NCBI RefSeq assembly: GCF_000143415.4
Contig: NW_003314270.1
Location: 310,001-374,000, forward strand
DNA from: Selaginella moellendorffii
Lineage: Eukaryota; Plantae; Lycopodiophyta
Direction: 5' to 3'
Length of the DNA: 64,000 nt
Every line of letters begins with the position of its first letter. Within the stretch, counting starts at the first letter, position 1. Under the pieces are notes generated by a model, which searched no databases, was not told the DNA's origin, and worked only from the letters and a program-made list of their open reading frames with translations. Shown piece by piece: positions 51,177 through 60,250 of this stretch. The position numbers were made by a program, and so were the translations under genes.

Positions 51177-52673
51177 TTACCCAGCCAACGAGCTGATGAA
51201 GTCTGCCAAGTTATGCCCTGAGCTGCCCGGCTGGGTGGAGAGTGCAGCCTGTCGGACCAGCTTCCTCCTTTGCTTGGCACGGTTCCTGAGCTCTTGGTCC
51301 TCCATTACAGCACGCAAGCCTCGCTCGACGTCATCTGCGGACGGCACACCATCCACCCCAATATCCACCGCAATTTTGTACTCGTCCACAAGGTGCCTGC
51401 AGGTTGGGAGCTGGTCACCTAAGAACGGCCAGGCCAGAATGGGAACACCAGCCAGCATAATACACTCCACCACGGAACTCCACCCGCAGTGTGAAACTAA
51501 TGCACCAATGGCCGGATGAGAGAGAACCAGCTGCTGAGGCACCCAACCTGTGAGGATTTTCCCCCTACCGGAGGTTCGCTCCACAAAGTTTGGAGGTAGC
51601 ACGCGGTTCAGGTAGGCGGCCGGCTCCTCGTTCCTGGGACTTGGAAGCGACCAGAGGAATCTAAAGCCGGACGATTCGAGTCCGTGTGCCAGCTCTCGAA
51701 TCATCTCGTCGCCCAAGACTATAAAGCTGCCGAAGCATATGAAGACCAGCGACGCCGTGGGTTGCTTGTCCAGCCATGAGACAAGCGCAGTGGAATCCTC
51801 GCTGTTCTTGCCGATTGAGACCGCTGTTCCTCGAATGTCTTCTTCAGAGGGTCGATCATCCTGGAGGTAGGAAGATGGATACAGAGGTCCTATGGAAATG
51901 CACCGTATCTCGGGGTACTCGCAATGTAAAGCATCCAATATCTGCACGGACACGTGAGAAATCACCCCCCACTAAATGCCCGTCTTACTGGTCCTTCAAG
52001 CTCTTCGGAAGTATTCAGTAGTATCCCGTTGGAGTGGACAAAATGCTTGGCTACGCCTTCTTTACCCAAGTAGATTCTGTAAACAAAGATCACGGAAACA
52101 AACAGAAACATAGAAAGAATGATACCCATGGGATTTGACGACAACGTCCAAAGGTAGCTCAGCCCATCGAAGAGGTGGAAGTCCGGGAACATGAACTACG
52201 CTCTGCATGTCTTGGTCCACATTCCCGCTTCGGCTGGGGCCGTGGAAGGAGAGCATGACAGCGAGATGCGCCGAAGCACCTGTGTAGAGGATATACTTTG
52301 GGATGCCTCTCTCCTCCACAGTTTGACTTGCCCAGAACATCACCATTCGATCGAGAACCACCGCTTTGGGGCGCAGCACATCGAGGTGTTTCCGGAGCGA
52401 GTCAGGCAGGGCAGTGGGAAAACGGGATGATGGCACAAGGTCGGGACGAGACTTGCGAACTCCAGGGAAAATGAAAGCCGGTCGAGGGGAAGGAGTGGAC
52501 TCCATGAGAGCGCGCATTTCAATGTTTGCTATGTCCGTGGTCATTCCAGATGGGTTCAGCCACGGCAGTAGCACCGTAACACGGCAGCCCTGAGAAGCGA
52601 GCTTCTTTGCAAAGAGCATACCTGTGTTGAAGTGACCACCGCCTTGAACGGTAACCAAAACGATGTCGGCCAT
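51177..52673 (-). CDS. UGT: UDP-glycosyltransferase (GT1), copy 2
   Basis: Near-identical to copy 1 with the same two introns and an intact PSPG box. Confidence 0.92.
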
Positions 52674-52964: not shown

Positions 52965-54100
52965 GTAACGTATGATCCACCAGCGAAATACAGTTAGAGA
53001 GAAGAAGTCACGGACTTAACTGTGGGGAAGTGCTCGAATTGCTTGTGGAAGCGCTTCCAAGCTCCCTCGTCGGGGAAAGCTATAGTCACCTGCAAGAGAT
53101 TTTTGGGACATCGCTTGCAAGCTCTCGACTGAGTCTCACATTTTTGGAATCCGGAAGCTTGAGCAGCGGGATGCCACTGTCGAAGCAGGGAAGAATGCTG
53201 TCACCAAAGTAAACCCTCTCCTGCTTTGCAAGTCCGGGTGAGCGAAAAGATCGAAAAGAAAAGAGAAACAAGCAAACCTGGAGAGCGTGGATGTCAAAGA
53301 TGACGAGACTCGTCGGACTACCCCTGGAGATTGGAATGTTGGAGAGTGAAGGCCGATGTCACCCTCGTCTTCCATGCGCTCCAACGTTCCAGTCGGGAAG
53401 AACGGCACCACGACCGTGAAGGAAGCGATGGACATCCTGGGAAGAGCGTAGATCACCAAGAGCTCTCAAAGATCACGGCGGGAGAGCTGAAAGGCGCAAG
53501 GAATGCAACGTGCTGGCCACGGATCCCAGCACGAACAAGTTTGGAAATCCATCCTCGAATGTGGTGAAAGAAAAAAGAGATCGATTGCTCAAACCCACTT
53601 ACATCCATTTGAGCTCGATGGAAACTGTCTCGGCAGCGACCACTCCGTGCCACATCCTCGTACTCGTTGCAATATGTCGAGGAGATTAGTTCGAGATGGA
53701 AACAAAAGGATTGTTCGCTTGAAGGAAGGCGAGGCCGCTGGAAGGCACGTCGTCATTGTGGACGATCTAGTGCGCTCTGGAGGCACTCTCAAGGAATGCC
53801 AGGTTCGTGTAGTAAGATTTCTTCATCGTTTCTTAGCCAGTGTCTTTCAGAATGTACTACAAGCGAATGGAGCCACGAAAGTGAGTGCTTACGCCACACA
53901 CGGCGACTTCCCTCACCAAACCTGGGAGCGATTTCTTCACGCGGCGGGAGGTACGTAGAAACTCCATTCTTTTCTTTCTACAGGAAACTTGTCAACGCTG
54001 TTAGCATTTCAGATAGCGAGAAAGAATTTTCTCACTTTTGGATCACAGATTCCTGAGTCCTAATTGGCAGGGCACCCTTTGAAGTTCTCGTGCTGGTTGG
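52965..54100. pseudogene. PRS: Class II PRPP synthase (PRS3/PRS4-type) pseudogene split by an internal inversion
   Basis: Minus strand 53680-52990: [10 protein letters not shown]...IRGQHVAFL...[16 protein letters not shown]...[21 protein letters not shown]...[21 protein letters not shown]. Plus strand from 53689: [38 protein letters not shown]...KVSAYATHG...HFWITDS. Confidence 0.9.
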
Positions 54101-54285
54101 TTCCTCCATCTCTAATTTTATTACTCTTCCTTTTGCTTGAGAGTTGATCCAGTTTTCTCCTCCACCTCCTTTTCAGGGCAGGATTTTTAATTTTTAATTT
54201 TTTCCTTTTGTTCTTCAGTTTATTGACAAGTAAATGAGCCTATCTTTCCGAATTTACTTACAAGCGTAGATTATGAGTTTTCCAC

Positions 54286-56136
54286 ATGGCTGAAAGAACT
54301 AGAAGATCTACAAACTATAATAGCGCATTTTTCCCGTCAATTAGCTGTCACTGGCTGGTGAAAACGAGTTGCGCCTGGTTGCCACGGTGGCGGTCCAAGT
54401 ACTTAAAGCATGTACTTTGTAGATTCTTTGAAGAATATGCCAGTTTGATGCTTCTTCTTCCTCTAGGCGTCCATAATGCGAACGATTTGATCAGGATGCA
54501 CGGGCGATTGGGAAATGCCGCCAAGGCTCGGGAGATTTTCGATCTAATTCCCGTGAAGGATCGTCTGAGCTGGGACTACATGCTGCTGGCCTACACCCAG
54601 GGCGGGTCGATCGACGAGGCATGGCGGATTTTCGATCAAATCCCGCAGCCCAGCGTGTTTTCCTTCAACATTTTGCTGTCGGCGCTCTCGCAGAGCGGGG
54701 ATTTTCGCGGGGCGCGCCGGATCTTCGACGGGATGCCGCAGTGGGATGTGGTATCGTGGAATTCGATGCTGTCCGCGCACATCCAGCACGGAGACCTGGC
54801 AGCCGCGCAGAGATTTTTCGATTGTATGCCCGAAAAAACTATAGTCTCGTGGAACGCGATGGTGTCTGCGTATGCCGCGAAGGGAGACACTAGCATTGCG
54901 AAGCTTTTGTTTGGCAAGATGCCCCAATGGGACGTGGCTTCTTTCAACGCAATGTTGACTGGGTTTGACCAAGAGGACTACGTTTTGGAATTGCGAAGAT
55001 TTTTCAACGCTCTTCCGGAGGCCAATTTTGTCTCTTGGACTATCGTCTTAACAGCATATGCCCGCATTGGGCATCTTTTTGAGTGTAAGGCCCTCTTTGA
55101 TGCGATGCCACACAGAGATATAGTGGCATATAACGTAATGCTCTCGGCATTTTCCCAGCACAGTACTGGGAAAGATTCCAAAGCCTTATTTGATACCATG
55201 CCACAGTGGGATATGCTTTCCTGGACATCACTTTTAAACGCATATATCCAAGACGGGCATATTGAGCGAGCCAAACGTACATACGACACAATGCCAATGC
55301 AGGATACAGTATCATGTACGGTTATGCTTACATTTCTCTCTACGTATGGTGCCATAGTCGATGCTAGGGTGGTCTATGAATCTTTGCCATGCAAGGATTT
55401 AGTTTCACAAAACGCAATGCTAGCGGCGTATGCCTCAAAAGGGTACCTTGAAGAAGCTCGATTTTTGTTTGACTCCATGCCACAACGAGACCTTGTTTCT
55501 TGTACTAATATGCTCATTTCGTATGCCCAAGTTGGTCATCTTAACGACGCAAAACGTGTTTTCATTTCCATGCCGGAGCATGACGTAGTATCTCGGACCG
55601 TCATGCTCATCGCATATGCCGTGAATGGGCATGTTTTAGAAGCCAATAAAGTGTTCGATTTGATGCTAGAGAGAGATCTCACCGTCTGGAGCGCCATGCT
55701 GGCTGCGTATGCCTACACGGGGCACTCTTTTGAAGCCCGCCACCTTTTCCAAACCATGAATTTCATTGAAGCAGCTGGTGAATCCTGCTTTGCACCCATT
55801 TTGATTTCCCTGGGACATGTTGGTGGGCTCGACGCCGCAAGAAATTGCTTCGTGTCGTTGCAAGGGGACTTCGCGTTAAAGCCTACCAAGCAACATTACG
55901 CGTGCATGGTGGACCTCATTGCCAAGGCAGGGCATCTGGAAGTTGCCGAGCTTCTCTTGGAAACCATGCCGTTTGTGCCTGATGCTGTGGATTGGACGTC
56001 CCTGCTTGGAGCTTCCAAATCTCAGGACAATGTCAAGCAGGGATTCTGTGTTGCAAAATCCGTGGTTGGCATGAACTCACAAGAATCAGCTGGTTATTTA
56101 CTACTGGCCAACATGTTACACGCAAACAAATCCTGA
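54286..56136 (+). CDS. PLS/SS-rich PPR protein with E domain, no DYW (PPR-B, intact copy; true start may be 54448)
   Basis: 616-aa intronless ORF with PPR repeats and HYACMVDLIAKAG...MPFVPDAVDWTSLLGA...GYLLLANM. Confidence 0.9.
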   Translation: MAERTRRSTNYNSAFFPSISCHWLVKTSCAWLPRWRSKYLKHVLCRFFEEYASLMLLLPLGVHNANDLIRMHGRLGNAAKAREIFDLIPVKDRLSWDYMLLAYTQGGSIDEAWRIFDQIPQPSVFSFNILLSALSQSGDFRGARRIFDGMPQWDVVSWNSMLSAHIQHGDLAAAQRFFDCMPEKTIVSWNAMVSAYAAKGDTSIAKLLFGKMPQWDVASFNAMLTGFDQEDYVLELRRFFNALPEANFVSWTIVLTAYARIGHLFECKALFDAMPHRDIVAYNVMLSAFSQHSTGKDSKALFDTMPQWDMLSWTSLLNAYIQDGHIERAKRTYDTMPMQDTVSCTVMLTFLSTYGAIVDARVVYESLPCKDLVSQNAMLAAYASKGYLEEARFLFDSMPQRDLVSCTNMLISYAQVGHLNDAKRVFISMPEHDVVSRTVMLIAYAVNGHVLEANKVFDLMLERDLTVWSAMLAAYAYTGHSFEARHLFQTMNFIEAAGESCFAPILISLGHVGGLDAARNCFVSLQGDFALKPTKQHYACMVDLIAKAGHLEVAELLLETMPFVPDAVDWTSLLGASKSQDNVKQGFCVAKSVVGMNSQESAGYLLLANMLHANKS

Positions 56137-56320
56137 GGATTTCCTACGACCATTGCAAGTTTTGTATTTTCTTTCCAAGTTTGTAGCTTGCAAGTTTCAA
56201 TCAATGATCCAAGCTATGAAAGAACAGCATGAAATCAGAAGAGAAACATGAATACCGTCAAACACAAGATTATCCTTGCAAGTTCTATACTCTCATAGAT
56301 GGAGAAAATACATTCTAAGG

Positions 56321-57394
56321 TTACATGAACTGGATGAAAGAAGGAGCTTGTACGCCATCCAAGCTAAAAACCACGCTCAGCCTCCCCGTTTCTACATTCC
56401 TGGAAAGAACGTTCACCTTGTTCGAGTTTTGGAGCCCAACCACGACCATCTCCCCGGACCGATCAAACGCAAAATGCCGAGGCCCAGAACCCCCGACTCG
56501 ATCCAGCCCAAGGAAGGTCAGGCCACCGTCACCTTCAGCGTCCACTCCAAACACCGCGATGGTATCCTCGGCGTTACCACGGTTGGACGCATACAAATAC
56601 CTCCCGTCCGGCGAGAGAGCCACCTCCGCCGCCGTGCACGCGCTCTTGTTCGCTACGCTATCATCCAGAGTGGACCAGCTCTGGATCAAACGCAGTGCTC
56701 CATTCCCCGGATCATACGAGAGCTGGCTCACGCTGTTTGCGAGCTCGTTGATCACGTACGCGAATCGCTCGTCGCGGGAGAAGATAAAATGCCGAGGACC
56801 CGACCCAGGCTCGAGTGAAACCTCCGGAGCAGCGGCCTCGTCGAGCTTCCCAGTCGAGACGTTGAGGACTCGGGTGTGGATCTTATCAGTGCCGAGATCA
56901 CAAACGAAGACAAACTTTCCCGAGGAGTCCGTGATGATCTGGTGGGGATGAGGAGCCTCTTGCCGGGGATTGTTGCTCGGCTCCGTCAGGCCTGGAACCT
57001 TGATCAGCGAAACCGGTTGCTGGTGATGATCCAAGAGCACACCGTGGTGGCGACTATGGTCGACTTGGAGAACGCCATAGCTGCCACCGTTGTAGTTCGC
57101 GAACAAGATCCACTTGCCGCTGGAGTGGATGCTAATGGCAGCCGGGTCCGCGCCGCAAGTGGAGGCGGGGTGGCCGAGACGAGTGAGAGAGGTGTGGTGT
57201 GGAGAGAAGGAGAATGCCTCGAGAGCGCCACTCTCCACTTCGTTTACGGCATAGAGAACGTTGCCCAGCGTGGCCAGAAAGGTGGGATTGGTACCTGATG
57301 GAAACGAGGCGATGGAGTAGAGATGGTGCTTGTCCAGCGCTAAGAGGTGGATTTCATCGCTGTAGCCACCGACCAACAAGAGCTGCTTCGTCAT
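56321..57394 (-). CDS. Seven-bladed beta-propeller lactonase (Pgl/YbhE 6-phosphogluconolactonase / muconate cycloisomerase family), intronless, 357 aa
   Basis: Family motifs NPTFL, LYAVNE, ANYNGGS, RQEAPHPHQ, VCDLGTDKI, GSGPRHF (twice), YVINEL, AAEVALSPDGRYLYASNRG. Confidence 0.93.
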   Translation of the reverse strand: MTKQLLLVGGYSDEIHLLALDKHHLYSIASFPSGTNPTFLATLGNVLYAVNEVESGALEAFSFSPHHTSLTRLGHPASTCGADPAAISIHSSGKWILFANYNGGSYGVLQVDHSRHHGVLLDHHQQPVSLIKVPGLTEPSNNPRQEAPHPHQIITDSSGKFVFVCDLGTDKIHTRVLNVSTGKLDEAAAPEVSLEPGSGPRHFIFSRDERFAYVINELANSVSQLSYDPGNGALRLIQSWSTLDDSVANKSACTAAEVALSPDGRYLYASNRGNAEDTIAVFGVDAEGDGGLTFLGLDRVGGSGPRHFAFDRSGEMVVVGLQNSNKVNVLSRNVETGRLSVVFSLDGVQAPSFIQFM

Positions 57395-57866
57395 CTTGAT
57401 CTAGAAAAGAAAAAGGGCTTTTGTGAAAGCAAAAGAAATGTGAAGGTTGCGTACCCGATGTGATGATGATAATGACGATCGAACAAGATAGATTGATACG
57501 AGGAGAAGGAGAAAGCGGCTGGAATCATGGAGAAATCCCATTGTTGGATTGTAGAATCTCCACGGGATTGGATTCGTACGAATTCTGTGACCTCCTTTTT
57601 CGTAACTCCTTTTCTTAAAAAAAATGGACCACGAAATTTGTATGGGAAAGCACTTCTGGAAGCACACATTCGTGCTGGGGACCTAAAGTCGCGGACAGAC
57701 AAAGCCAGCTATCCATCCGGGCATTCTCGAGAATAAAAAAGTTCTCAACTCAGAAGGCTGGGCACTTTGCTTTAGAATGTCATAGTTATATGTATGAGCT
57801 CTACAAAAATTGTCAGTGTACAGTGGCTGTGGTGGCAACCTCGTGTTTGGATCATAAGATAGATGA

Positions 57867-60250
57867 TCATCCTGGCGATTTTTCTCCGTCCTCTATGTTG
57901 TAGTGCGCAAGCATAAGCTGCATTCCATACCTGGGCTTGAGCGTGATGGCAGTGACCGGAGCGTGCCTGTAATTGGGAGAGATCTTGAACTCGAATCTCT
58001 GGAGGATCATTGCCAGGACCACTTTGGCCTCCATCATTGCAAAGCTCTGCCCGAGGCAAGCTCGCGGCCCCAGCGAAAATGGCATGAAACTCCACAGCTT
58101 TTGGTGCTGAAGCTTGCAAGCCGCCGCCACTCCATCGGCGAATCGGGCCGGGTTAAAGTGGAGGGCGTCGTCCCCCCACACGTCTTTGCTGTGGTGGAGT
58201 GCCACAATGGGTATCCAAAACGTAGTCCCCCGCGGATATTTCACGTCCTGGATGCTCAAGTCCACCAAAGATTCCCTCACCAGTGCCGGCGCCGGAGGAT
58301 ATAAACGGAGTACCTCGTTGAGAATCATTCCCAGCTGCAAGAAAGAAAAGAAAAAGGTGGCGAAAGATTAGTGTACACACAGAGAGAAAGAGAGAGAATT
58401 TCTTCCAAGACACTCAAAAGCAGCTACGTGGAGTTATGACTTTGGCCTAGGACAGGAGGTGGACTAGTTGGCGTGCAAAGTATACTGTAAAACAACTTAC
58501 AATCTTTAGCTTGGGAAGGACATCGGCATCCGGAACGGAGGACTTGGACGGGAGATGCTCCATCACTTCGGCACGGCCGCGCTGCTGCCACTCTGGATTC
58601 AAGGCCAGAAGCATCAGAGTCCAGGTGAGCAGCGCCGATGTGGTCTCGTGCCCCGTGAAGAAGATGGTTTTGCACTCCTCCACAAGCTCCGGCGTGTCAA
58701 ACTGCTGTGCAGCTGCTGCTGCTTCGGACTTGTCTCGCTCGCTCTCGGACAGCATCAGTCCCAAAAAGTCGCTTCCATACCCGTGCTTTTGTCGTCCCGC
58801 ACGGCGCTCCAGTACAAGCTCTCGCAGCGCTCGCTCCATGTCCCTTTTGATCCGGGAAGCTCTTCTATTGGCAGCCGTGGGGAGCATCCTAAATGATCTT
58901 TACTTTAGTACTGGCTGTTGCATGCATTATAAAGAAATATAACAATAGAATAAGGTGGTGGAAGAACCAGAAGCTAATGGAGGCAGGCAGGACTTTGATA
59001 TACAAGGTATATAAATGGAGGAATCATTGGAAATCATGCATGCTTTGTTCCACGCAAAGGTTGATGGCGATGGAGACACAAAATAGAGGGAGTGAAGGAA
59101 CCTTGAGTGCGAGAGAGGATTTTTGTGATATCATACCTGTTGCATGGAAGCCAGAGAAAACGATTGGACTGAGCGAAAACTTTCTGGAGGCACGTCAGGA
59201 GCTGGAACACCCTCTTGCCTTTTTCGTGACTGCTGGTGCTGCTAAACGCGGTACGAGCAATTACATCGGCCGTGGCCATGGATAAGTAATAGTTGATGTC
59301 GATCTCCGCGGATGATCCATCGCCGCTCCTCCTCGAGCTCTTGTTGTCAATGATTTGGCTCCACTGGCCCAGCATTTGAGACGTGCTCGCCACCATCTCG
59401 GGTACCATTTTCTGCCAATAATTATGCCTCATGAATTCATATCATATAGAAAGATAGAAAGTAAGAGCTTGCTCAAAGAAGAATTAACTTCTTCAAATCC
59501 AAAGAAGTATATGTCTTTGGGAGGGAAAGAGAGATCTTACCTTGAGCATTTCGGCATGGAACGCCGGGCCAACGATGCGTCTCCGGTGAGCCCAGCTCTC
59601 TCCATTGGCATACACCATTCCATTCCCAAGCAGCAGCACACCACCCTTTTTGAGTAGCAGCGACTTTCCAAAGTGCTCGGCCTTGGTGGACAAGATCTCC
59701 TTGATCATCTCGGGCTCCACAACCGTGATCCTCGGCTCCATTCCCCACCAGAAGAGAAACCTCTTCCCTGTCACACACACACATTAGTTAGTTTACAAGT
59801 CTTTGGAGAAGCTTGGCAGAGAAACAGAGGAATGTGTGCTAGAAGTGTGGATATGGGGGAGGGAAATTCGAGCTATATACCGTAGATGGCGGACCAGTAT
59901 GTAAAGTGGGGGCATATCCTGGGAAGAAGATCATGGTCGCCAACTCGCATGTCCTTGGATGTTGCCAGTTCTCTCATCTCGGATACTTGGTGCATGTTTC
60001 CAATCAGGAACTTTGGAGGGGGGCCATCCAGGCCTTGCTCGAGGAGACTCTTTCTCAGGTGGACATATCTGAAGGCCACGGACGCGCTCCACACCAGGAT
60101 CACGAGCAAAGAGGCGAGGAAAACGAGCATTGGCGCGGCAAGGAGGAGCATTGGGAGCTTGAGGGAGATTCCCTGGGAAAATGCAGGCAAATTATGACTC
60201 ATTCTCTGGAAGTCTGGAATCGATGAATTGCTGGGTGTGATTGACACCAT
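57867..60250 (-). CDS. Cytochrome P450, clan 72, CYP735/CYP715-like; exons about 60250-59881, 59767-59541, 59411-59137, 58888-58501, 58334-57867
   Basis: TM anchor, GPPPKFLIGN, I-helix ECKTIFFTGHETT, EVLRLYPP, FNPARF, heme motif FSLGPRACLG; five-exon clan-72 layout. Start codon uncertain (60250, 60202 or 60151). Confidence 0.93.

Follow-up and report, generated by a model that had tools for sequence, protein, structure and literature searches.

The lactonase gene and its transcript

We analysed a 64,000-nucleotide stretch of the Selaginella moellendorffii genome (the window; contig NW_003314270.1, positions 310,001 to 374,000 of assembly GCF_000143415.4), in which an earlier note had singled out a microbial-type beta-propeller lactonase gene as a candidate for horizontal gene transfer (HGT). 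The intact open reading frame (ORF) of 357 amino acids on which that proposal was built is present at 56321..57394 on the minus strand, running from ATG to TAA. Its best database matches are two S. moellendorffii proteins, XP_024542384.1 (97–98% identity) and XP_002990983.2 (84%). The first of these carries 27 additional N-terminal residues, and nearly the same peptide is encoded just upstream of the ORF in a different frame. RNA contigs join this 29-codon exon to the ORF across a 54-nucleotide intron, and the spliced translation of the two exons equals XP_024528602.1 (388 aa) residue for residue, so the gene is not intronless as originally described. This locus, LOC112345641, is one of two S. 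moellendorffii paralogues and is referred to below as copy A. XP_024542384.1 is the product of the other haplotype and has a 4-aa deletion. The parts of the gene are as follows.

57455..57541, minus strand: coding exon 1, 29 codons with the ATG at 57541, encoding the signal-peptide-like leader MGFLHDSSRFLLLLVSIYLVRSSLSSSHR; defined by the DNA and the match to XP_024528602.1
57401..57454, minus strand: intron of 54 nucleotides (GT..AG, a multiple of three), defined by the DNA and the RNA contig joint 57400/57455
56321..57400, minus strand: coding exon 2, two linker codons (I, K) followed by the 357-aa lactonase body and stop; the translation starts I-K-M-T-K-Q
57542..57724, minus strand: 5' untranslated region (UTR) of uncertain extent; RNA contigs extend to 57681 (runs X1 and X18) and 57724 (run X12)
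56183..56320, minus strand: 3' UTR, approximate; contigs extend to 56183 (X2 record 24) and 56186 (X12 record 11) and do not show transcript ends, which leaves the end of the UTR undefined

The stretch is present in 20 RNA runs from 11 studies. The splice joint 57400/57455, which skips 54 nucleotides (CT..AC), occurs in contigs of X1 and X12, and loose contig ends in X2 and X18 carry letters from the opposite side of the joint. The runs that support the lactonase joint do contain RNA, because they also show an intron of the neighbouring cytochrome P450 gene spliced out (58335-58500 in X2). Both haplotypes appear in the RNA contigs, as the allele with a 12-nt deletion is present among them. The lactonase gene is transcribed, and its mRNA joins a short leader exon to an uninterrupted enzyme exon.

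Several sequence variants were noted at the locus. The 12-nt deletion is in frame, lies at 57025 (LLDH) and marks the other allele; it was seen in contigs of X1 and X2. An insertion variant of ~10 nt falls between the P450 gene and the lactonase gene at 57724-57726. Run X12, which has a different organism code, shows a third pattern of variants that includes a 6-nt deletion at 56259.

Plant neighbours and integration in the genome

The genes around copy A are of plant type, and the pentatricopeptide repeat (PPR) gene and the P450 exons that the earlier note placed on its two sides are indeed found there.

53674..56136, plus strand: PPR gene, convergent with the lactonase gene; ORF 54286-56136 contains PPR repeats (E 3e-66), and the NCBI model has 648 aa
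57867..60250, minus strand: cytochrome P450 gene, upstream and co-oriented, with several exons; the NCBI model has 575 aa, and Pfam p450 matches ORFs 57867-58340 and 58447-58887
51177..52673, minus strand: UDP-glycosyltransferase (UGT) gene, co-oriented, with two exons; ORFs 52062-52673 and 51177-51965 match PF00201 (E 2.4e-20)

A distance of about 470 bp to the P450 stop had been given, and this value is right when measured from the ATG of the 357-aa ORF; only ~325 bp separate that stop from the real start codon of the lactonase gene.

Could the ORF derive from an associated microbe and have entered the assembly as a contaminant or artefact? The microbial affiliation of the family is the one observation that speaks for this. 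Against it, the order P450, lactonase, PPR, UGT is identical on two haplotype scaffolds, GL377574.1 (3.1 Mb) and GL377615.1 (1.5 Mb), and contigs from independent runs bridge the lactonase gene to both of its neighbours: X1 record 1 (55897-56601) reaches the PPR gene, and X2 record 29 (57471-58304) reaches a P450 exon. The gene also contains a spliced GT..AG intron, allelic variants including the 12-nt indel occur in RNA, a paralogue lies on a third scaffold, and the G+C content at third codon positions (GC3) is 0.69 for the lactonase gene versus 0.68 for the P450 exon. The lactonase gene is truly integrated in the plant genome, as the first reading of the sequence had argued, and an origin from contamination is excluded. 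The linkage to the flanks, whose failure that reading had named as grounds for giving up the proposal, is directly visible in the contigs.

The PPR and lactonase genes converge, with no more than ~50 bp between their 3' ends. X1 record 1 covers both, and the two 3' UTRs probably overlap on opposite strands.

A second copy of the gene

Copy B (SELMODRAFT_132594 / LOC9660559) is an intact 355-aa ORF on a third scaffold, GL377678.1. Its neighbours encode aegerolysin, X8, lipocalin and PPR-DYW proteins, with no P450 and no UGT among them. The two copies share 91% DNA identity, with dS 0.21 and dN/dS 0.31, a ratio that indicates purifying selection on both since the duplication. The enzyme-coding part lacks an intron in each copy.

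Two features of the copy B locus deserve mention. The RefSeq model (XP_002990983.2; L014:6001-7277, plus strand) splices out the end of the 355-aa ORF and closes with an unrelated tail. Read without that splice, the ORF ends in ...FIQFM as copy A does, and the 3' intron of the model may be an artefact of prediction. In addition, a gene of the aegerolysin family (PF06355; L014:3656-4876, minus strand) lies ~1.1 kb upstream of copy B. This family is mainly fungal and bacterial. Two genes of microbial type thus adjoin at this locus, and the aegerolysin gene may also be a candidate for transfer.

Protein family and fold

The 357-aa ORF matches Pfam family PF10282 with an E-value of 1.2e-83 and 281.6 bits (cut-off 21.7), over profile positions 2-344 of 344. 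An AlphaFold2 (AF2) model built from a 50-sequence alignment has a pLDDT of 90.1, a pTM of 0.87 and ~28 strands. The ten best Foldseek matches to it are all structures of the PF10282 family (TM 0.74-0.92), and those with TM 0.77-0.92 include 3scy, 3fgb, 6igb, 4qrj, 3hfq, 6nau and 1ri6. Taken together, the model and these matches predict a seven-bladed beta-propeller.

The closest characterised enzyme is PpgL, a periplasmic metal-independent gluconolactonase of Pseudomonas aeruginosa according to the title of Song et al. 2019 as cited in PMC13578688. The motifs RQ-x2-H-x-H, DLG-x-D, GPRH, E, SNR, PR-x-F and Q-x-S are common to PpgL and the Selaginella protein and are invariant across the 50 sequences; the motifs quoted in the earlier note are likewise present and fall in columns conserved throughout the family. 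Among the polar residues kept (388-aa numbering) are R175/Q176, H180/H182, D197/D201, R232/H233, E248, R303 and R337. These positions, whose catalytic roles are presumed, are invariant or nearly so in the alignment and line up with PpgL. Since the invariant residues are retained, the predicted fold is intact and selection is purifying, the protein is very likely an active enzyme.

A putative signal peptide

The earlier note had described the protein as having no targeting peptide. This probably fails, because the upstream exon encodes a leader, MGFLHDSSRFLLLLVSIYLVRSSLSSSHR, that is laid out like a signal peptide, with a basic residue, a hydrophobic core of 11 residues and a tail rich in Ser. 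The core comprises residues 10-20 and has a mean Kyte-Doolittle value of 2.96, and residues 11-23 form a low-confidence helix in the AF2 model. Signal-peptide-like N-termini are also present in the clade relatives P0254, P0161, P0293, P0137 and P0291, and the bacterial relatives P0003, P0005 and P0018 begin with twin-arginine (Tat) motifs. The export signals of these relatives sit at the same position as the Selaginella leader. We regard the leader of copy A as probably a cleavable signal peptide. It would direct the protein into the secretory pathway.

Several points limit the case for secretion. The leader was assigned by inspection. One contig (X1 record 7, 57372-57500) is unspliced, and in three runs the contig depth of exon 1 is several-fold below that of exon 2. 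The 5' UTR contains an out-of-frame upstream ATG (uATG) at 57669 whose reading frame, part of the listed ORF 57391..57702, crosses the 54-nt intron and terminates at a TGA that shares letters with the internal ATG at 57394 (ATGA). If transcription begins upstream of it, this uATG could favour re-initiation at the leaderless start. Given the low depth of exon 1, the unspliced contig and the position at which the uATG frame ends, a leaderless 357-aa form may be made from the internal ATG in addition to the longer protein, or instead of it. In copy B, the upstream DNA does not align with the leader of copy A, and the NCBI model begins at the Met of the enzyme body.

Distribution and phylogeny

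Searched exhaustively with phmmer, 1.84 billion cluster representatives yielded 8,992 relatives at E < 1e-10, and only Selaginella's own cluster exceeded 42% identity. The best-scoring matches are bacterial or metagenomic (Planctomycetota, Thermomicrobiales/Chloroflexota, Acidobacteriota and Armatimonadota), with identities of up to 40-42%. No plant protein other than those of Selaginella occurs among the best matches of this search or in any of the trees, and word-based searches of 90% clusters agree in finding no non-Selaginella plant match above 42% identity. The view that the family is otherwise microbial was upheld, and in the exhaustive search no other plant protein came closer than ~40% identity. 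Among the best matches are also two giant proteins, P0133 (2328 aa) and P0222 (3250 aa), in which the lactonase propeller matches at 9 and 14 separate places, respectively.

Trees pointed to microbial eukaryotes as the nearest kin. A FastTree phylogeny of 268 sequences placed the Selaginella genes in a set of 10 rows whose named members are all eukaryotes, namely the chytrid Blyttiomyces helicus, the heterolobosean Acrasis kona and the vampyrellid Leptophrys vorax. A site-heterogeneous analysis in IQ-TREE (LG+C20+F+G4 PMSF, 90 rows) recovered Selaginella together with this clade at an ultrafast bootstrap (UFBoot) of 96 and an SH-aLRT of 99. With six more members included and the long-branched chytrid removed, support rose to 100/100. 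Inside the clade, Selaginella was placed either with the chytrid (83/69) or with Leptophrys (87/67), on a stem of 1.1-1.25 substitutions per site. Maximum-likelihood phylogeny had been proposed as one of the checks, with nesting in a bacterial or fungal clade as support for HGT. What it returned agrees in part: the Selaginella genes group with Heterolobosea, Vampyrellida, one chytrid and eukaryotic transcripts, and this clade is itself nested among the lactonases of soil bacteria.

The neighbours in the clade are truly eukaryotic on several counts. PIP5K, Vps39 and HSP70 genes accompany the metagenomic member P0137 on its contig, the contig that carries the Acrasis gene P0276 is 165 kb long, introns are present in the Blyttiomyces gene, and the P0254 contig ends in a poly(A) tail. 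A profile search built on the clade alignment brought in no more than a second paralogue from Acrasis and two proteins from metagenomes; this search missed some of the clade's own members, its reach being limited by the word filter.

The strength of the placement was assessed by a scan, which replaced an initial approximately unbiased (AU) test with a single constraint. The Selaginella pair was pruned and regrafted on all 122 branches of the tree. The seven best placements (delta log-likelihood, lnL, 0-6.1; p-AU 0.06-0.88) all fall within the eukaryotic clade or on its stem, and they make up seven of the eight placements that pass the AU test. The best placement outside costs 16.4 lnL units (p 0.045), and one beside Chloroflexota is borderline (p 0.050). 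Resampling of estimated log-likelihoods (RELL) gave a weight of 0.979 to placements inside the clade and 0.021 to those outside. The Selaginella genes are thus nested with support among non-plant sequences (96/99, 100/100, RELL 0.979).

These data also bear on the possibility that Selaginella received the gene directly from a bacterium, in an event unconnected with the other eukaryotes. The grouping with protists would then be artefactual, produced by long branches or by a secreted lifestyle in common. The top matches by E-value and identity are bacterial or metagenomic, the Chloroflexota placement sits at the edge of rejection, and the first constrained test gave p 0.225, all of which would fit such an event. 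However, the site-heterogeneous model supports the eukaryotic clade strongly, even without the long-branched chytrid, and the other members do not have unusually long branches. The best bacterial placement lies 16.4 lnL units down, and placements outside the clade together hold 2% of the RELL weight. We consider a direct bacterial origin improbable.

Two more specific sources were tried and rejected. A scan of GTDB genomes for a particular bacterial donor gave only loci with 28-36% identity (Tepidisphaerales, Verrucomicrobia, Chloroflexota, Agromyces and others). An origin in Dikarya was considered because Ascomycota PF10282 clusters are feature-neighbours of P0254 in the protein atlas, but a sequence search with P0254 found no named fungi.

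Origin of the gene

We favour horizontal acquisition of the lactonase gene, either from a eukaryotic donor or from a bacterium near the source of the clade, with a probability of roughly 0.6. This is the most economical explanation, because vertical descent would require losses in all other sampled green lineages and because the enzyme bodies are intronless. The horizontal origin proposed in the earlier note therefore remains the preferred one, whereas its suggestion of a bacterial or fungal source has to be modified, as the nearest kin form a microbial-eukaryote clade and are neither bacteria nor ordinary fungi. In the scheme that we propose, a soil microbe would have passed the gene to the Selaginella lineage; the likeliest donor would be a microbial eukaryote, or else a bacterium near the clade's source. 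The transfer would be old, given the long stem and the fully host-like composition, and would have been followed by duplication of the gene.

The principal alternative is vertical descent. An early eukaryote would have possessed a secreted PF10282 lactonase, possibly through a single bacterial acquisition, and the gene would have survived patchily in Heterolobosea, Rhizaria, a chytrid and Selaginella while being lost in all other sampled green plants and algae. Placement of Selaginella on the clade stem passes the AU test (delta lnL 0.82, p-AU 0.58). The long stem and the host-like composition point to long residence, and the combination of a signal peptide with a propeller is common to many clade members. 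On the other hand, independent losses are needed in chlorophytes, several streptophyte algal lines, bryophytes, ferns and seed plants. The absence of introns from the enzyme part of both copies is unusual for an old plant gene, and branching inside the clade does not track the relationships of eukaryotes. We regard vertical descent as less likely than horizontal acquisition but as a serious alternative, and as a less remote prospect than a direct bacterial transfer.

A number of points count against horizontal acquisition or limit what it can claim. The named members of the clade come from four eukaryotic supergroups, a spread that would also suit an ancient eukaryotic gene lost many times. 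The first single-constraint AU test allowed Selaginella outside the clade (p-AU 0.225), and the rejection of bacterial placements is marginal (best p 0.045-0.050). The case for HGT rests on absence from other plants, and database coverage of other lycophytes is uncertain. The assemblies of S. moellendorffii runs themselves have no full-length copies in the 90% cluster, and unannotated plants could hide orthologues. Identity to any relative is only ~36-40%, and no donor can be named.

Horizontal acquisition may be extended to a fuller scenario, which we offer as speculative and consider unlikely. A soil protist or chytrid-like microbe might have given an ancestor of Selaginella a secreted lactonase. 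The leader of copy A, on its separate exon, would then have been either gained after the transfer or split off from the body when the 54-nt intron was inserted. Lying between a P450 and a glycosyltransferase, the enzyme may serve a lycophyte-specific pathway in which lactones are made or opened.

Overall, we interpret copy A as a microbial-type enzyme gene that an early-diverging land plant has domesticated. The case for HGT is good, though short of proof. The gene is less usual in having protists and a chytrid as nearest kin and a probable signal peptide on a separate exon. The Selaginella lactonase is not mentioned as a transfer candidate in the searchable literature by name, family or identifier. 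If the proposal is correct, it adds a plant case in which amoebae, a vampyrellid and a chytrid are the closest kin. Steps of domestication would be directly visible as well, namely a spliceosomal intron, a secretory leader encoded by a separate exon, codon usage like that of the host, duplication and purifying selection.

Predicted function

In RefSeq, copy A is an 'uncharacterized protein', and its paralogue is labelled '6-phosphogluconolactonase' in UniProt. A role as 6-phosphogluconolactonase (6PGL) is not borne out for copy A. The protein scores far below both NCBIfam equivalog cut-offs (115.6 bits versus 370 for NF008258, and 133.4 versus 500 for the Staphylococcus type, NF050136), and a secretory leader would be unsuited to a phosphorylated cytosolic substrate and would keep the protein apart from the pentose-phosphate pathway. 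The 6PGLs of flowering plants are of the unrelated DevB/SOL type. The UniProt label is probably an over-annotation, and it would mislead reconstructions of the pentose-phosphate pathway in lycophytes.

By analogy with PpgL, the activity is probably hydrolysis of sugar lactones by a secreted enzyme, the substrate being a guess. Copy A would hydrolyse sugar-acid (aldono-) or similar lactones in the secretory pathway or apoplast, and would do so without a metal cofactor. The gene also draws attention to a small and unstudied branch of the PF10282 lactonases in eukaryotes; the literature searched contained no enzymology on it.

A working link with the adjacent P450, suggested in the earlier note, did not find support. 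Copy B has no P450 neighbour, and nothing else joins the two genes. We rejected this partnership as a candidate, as the adjacency is kept between haplotypes, which is trivial, and is absent at copy B. One X2 contig runs across the gap between lactonase and P450. Proximity to a P450 and a UGT means little, because both belong to very large plant families. We note that the UGT and P450 genes are both co-oriented with the lactonase gene, with only the convergent PPR gene in between, an arrangement that may reflect chance or a small metabolic gene cluster.

Comparison with known systems

The Selaginella lactonase and PpgL (PDB 6IGB) share family and fold (Foldseek TM 0.82/0.88; 30% identity; phmmer E 7e-36), and the motifs RQ-x2-H-x-H, DLG-x-DK, PGSGPRH, NRG, PR-x-FAF and QNS occur in both. 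PpgL carries an N-terminal export signal, and copy A has a putative one. The two are nevertheless not orthologues. At ~30% identity, PpgL belongs to another part of the family tree, whereas the Selaginella gene falls into a separate, eukaryote-containing clade, and its leader is encoded on its own exon behind an intron.

Other solved structures are informative to different degrees. Escherichia coli YbhE/Pgl (1RI6) and the Klebsiella 6PGL (6NAU) have the same family and fold (TM ~0.77-0.90, 22-23% identity), but enzymes of this type are cytosolic, whereas the Selaginella protein probably has a secretory leader. The best solved-structure matches, both by sequence (E 1e-39 to 5e-38) and by fold, are the Bacteroides proteins BF1038, BT Q89ZH8 and BACUNI_04672 (3SCY, 3FGB and 4QRJ); these PF10282 proteins are uncharacterised and add nothing on the substrate in Selaginella. 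The 3-carboxy-cis,cis-muconate lactonizing enzyme of Neurospora crassa (1JOF) is a seven-bladed propeller of the same superfamily (TM 0.74/0.78). With 14% identity and no sequence-search match at E < 0.01, it differs enough that the Selaginella gene is not of this fungal type.

The closest counterparts by phylogeny are KAL0485081.1 of Acrasis kona and its paralogue, EP00475_P040296 of Leptophrys vorax and RKO87803.1 of Blyttiomyces helicus. They share clade, length and domain with the Selaginella protein, several have signal peptides, and they are only 31-37% identical to it.

Plants appear to have acquired a modest set of enzymes from microbes, with bacteria or fungi as most of the documented donors. 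Transfers from microbes to plants have been reported in early-diverging land plants for a DNA-3-methyladenine glycosylase (PMC5570899), AEE epimerases (PMC3605383) and metallophore synthesis genes (PMC12454661). Like these, the Selaginella lactonase is a microbial-type enzyme embedded in a plant genome, with an intron and host-like composition. It differs from them in being known so far only in Selaginella and in having protists, rather than bacteria or Dikarya, as its nearest kin.

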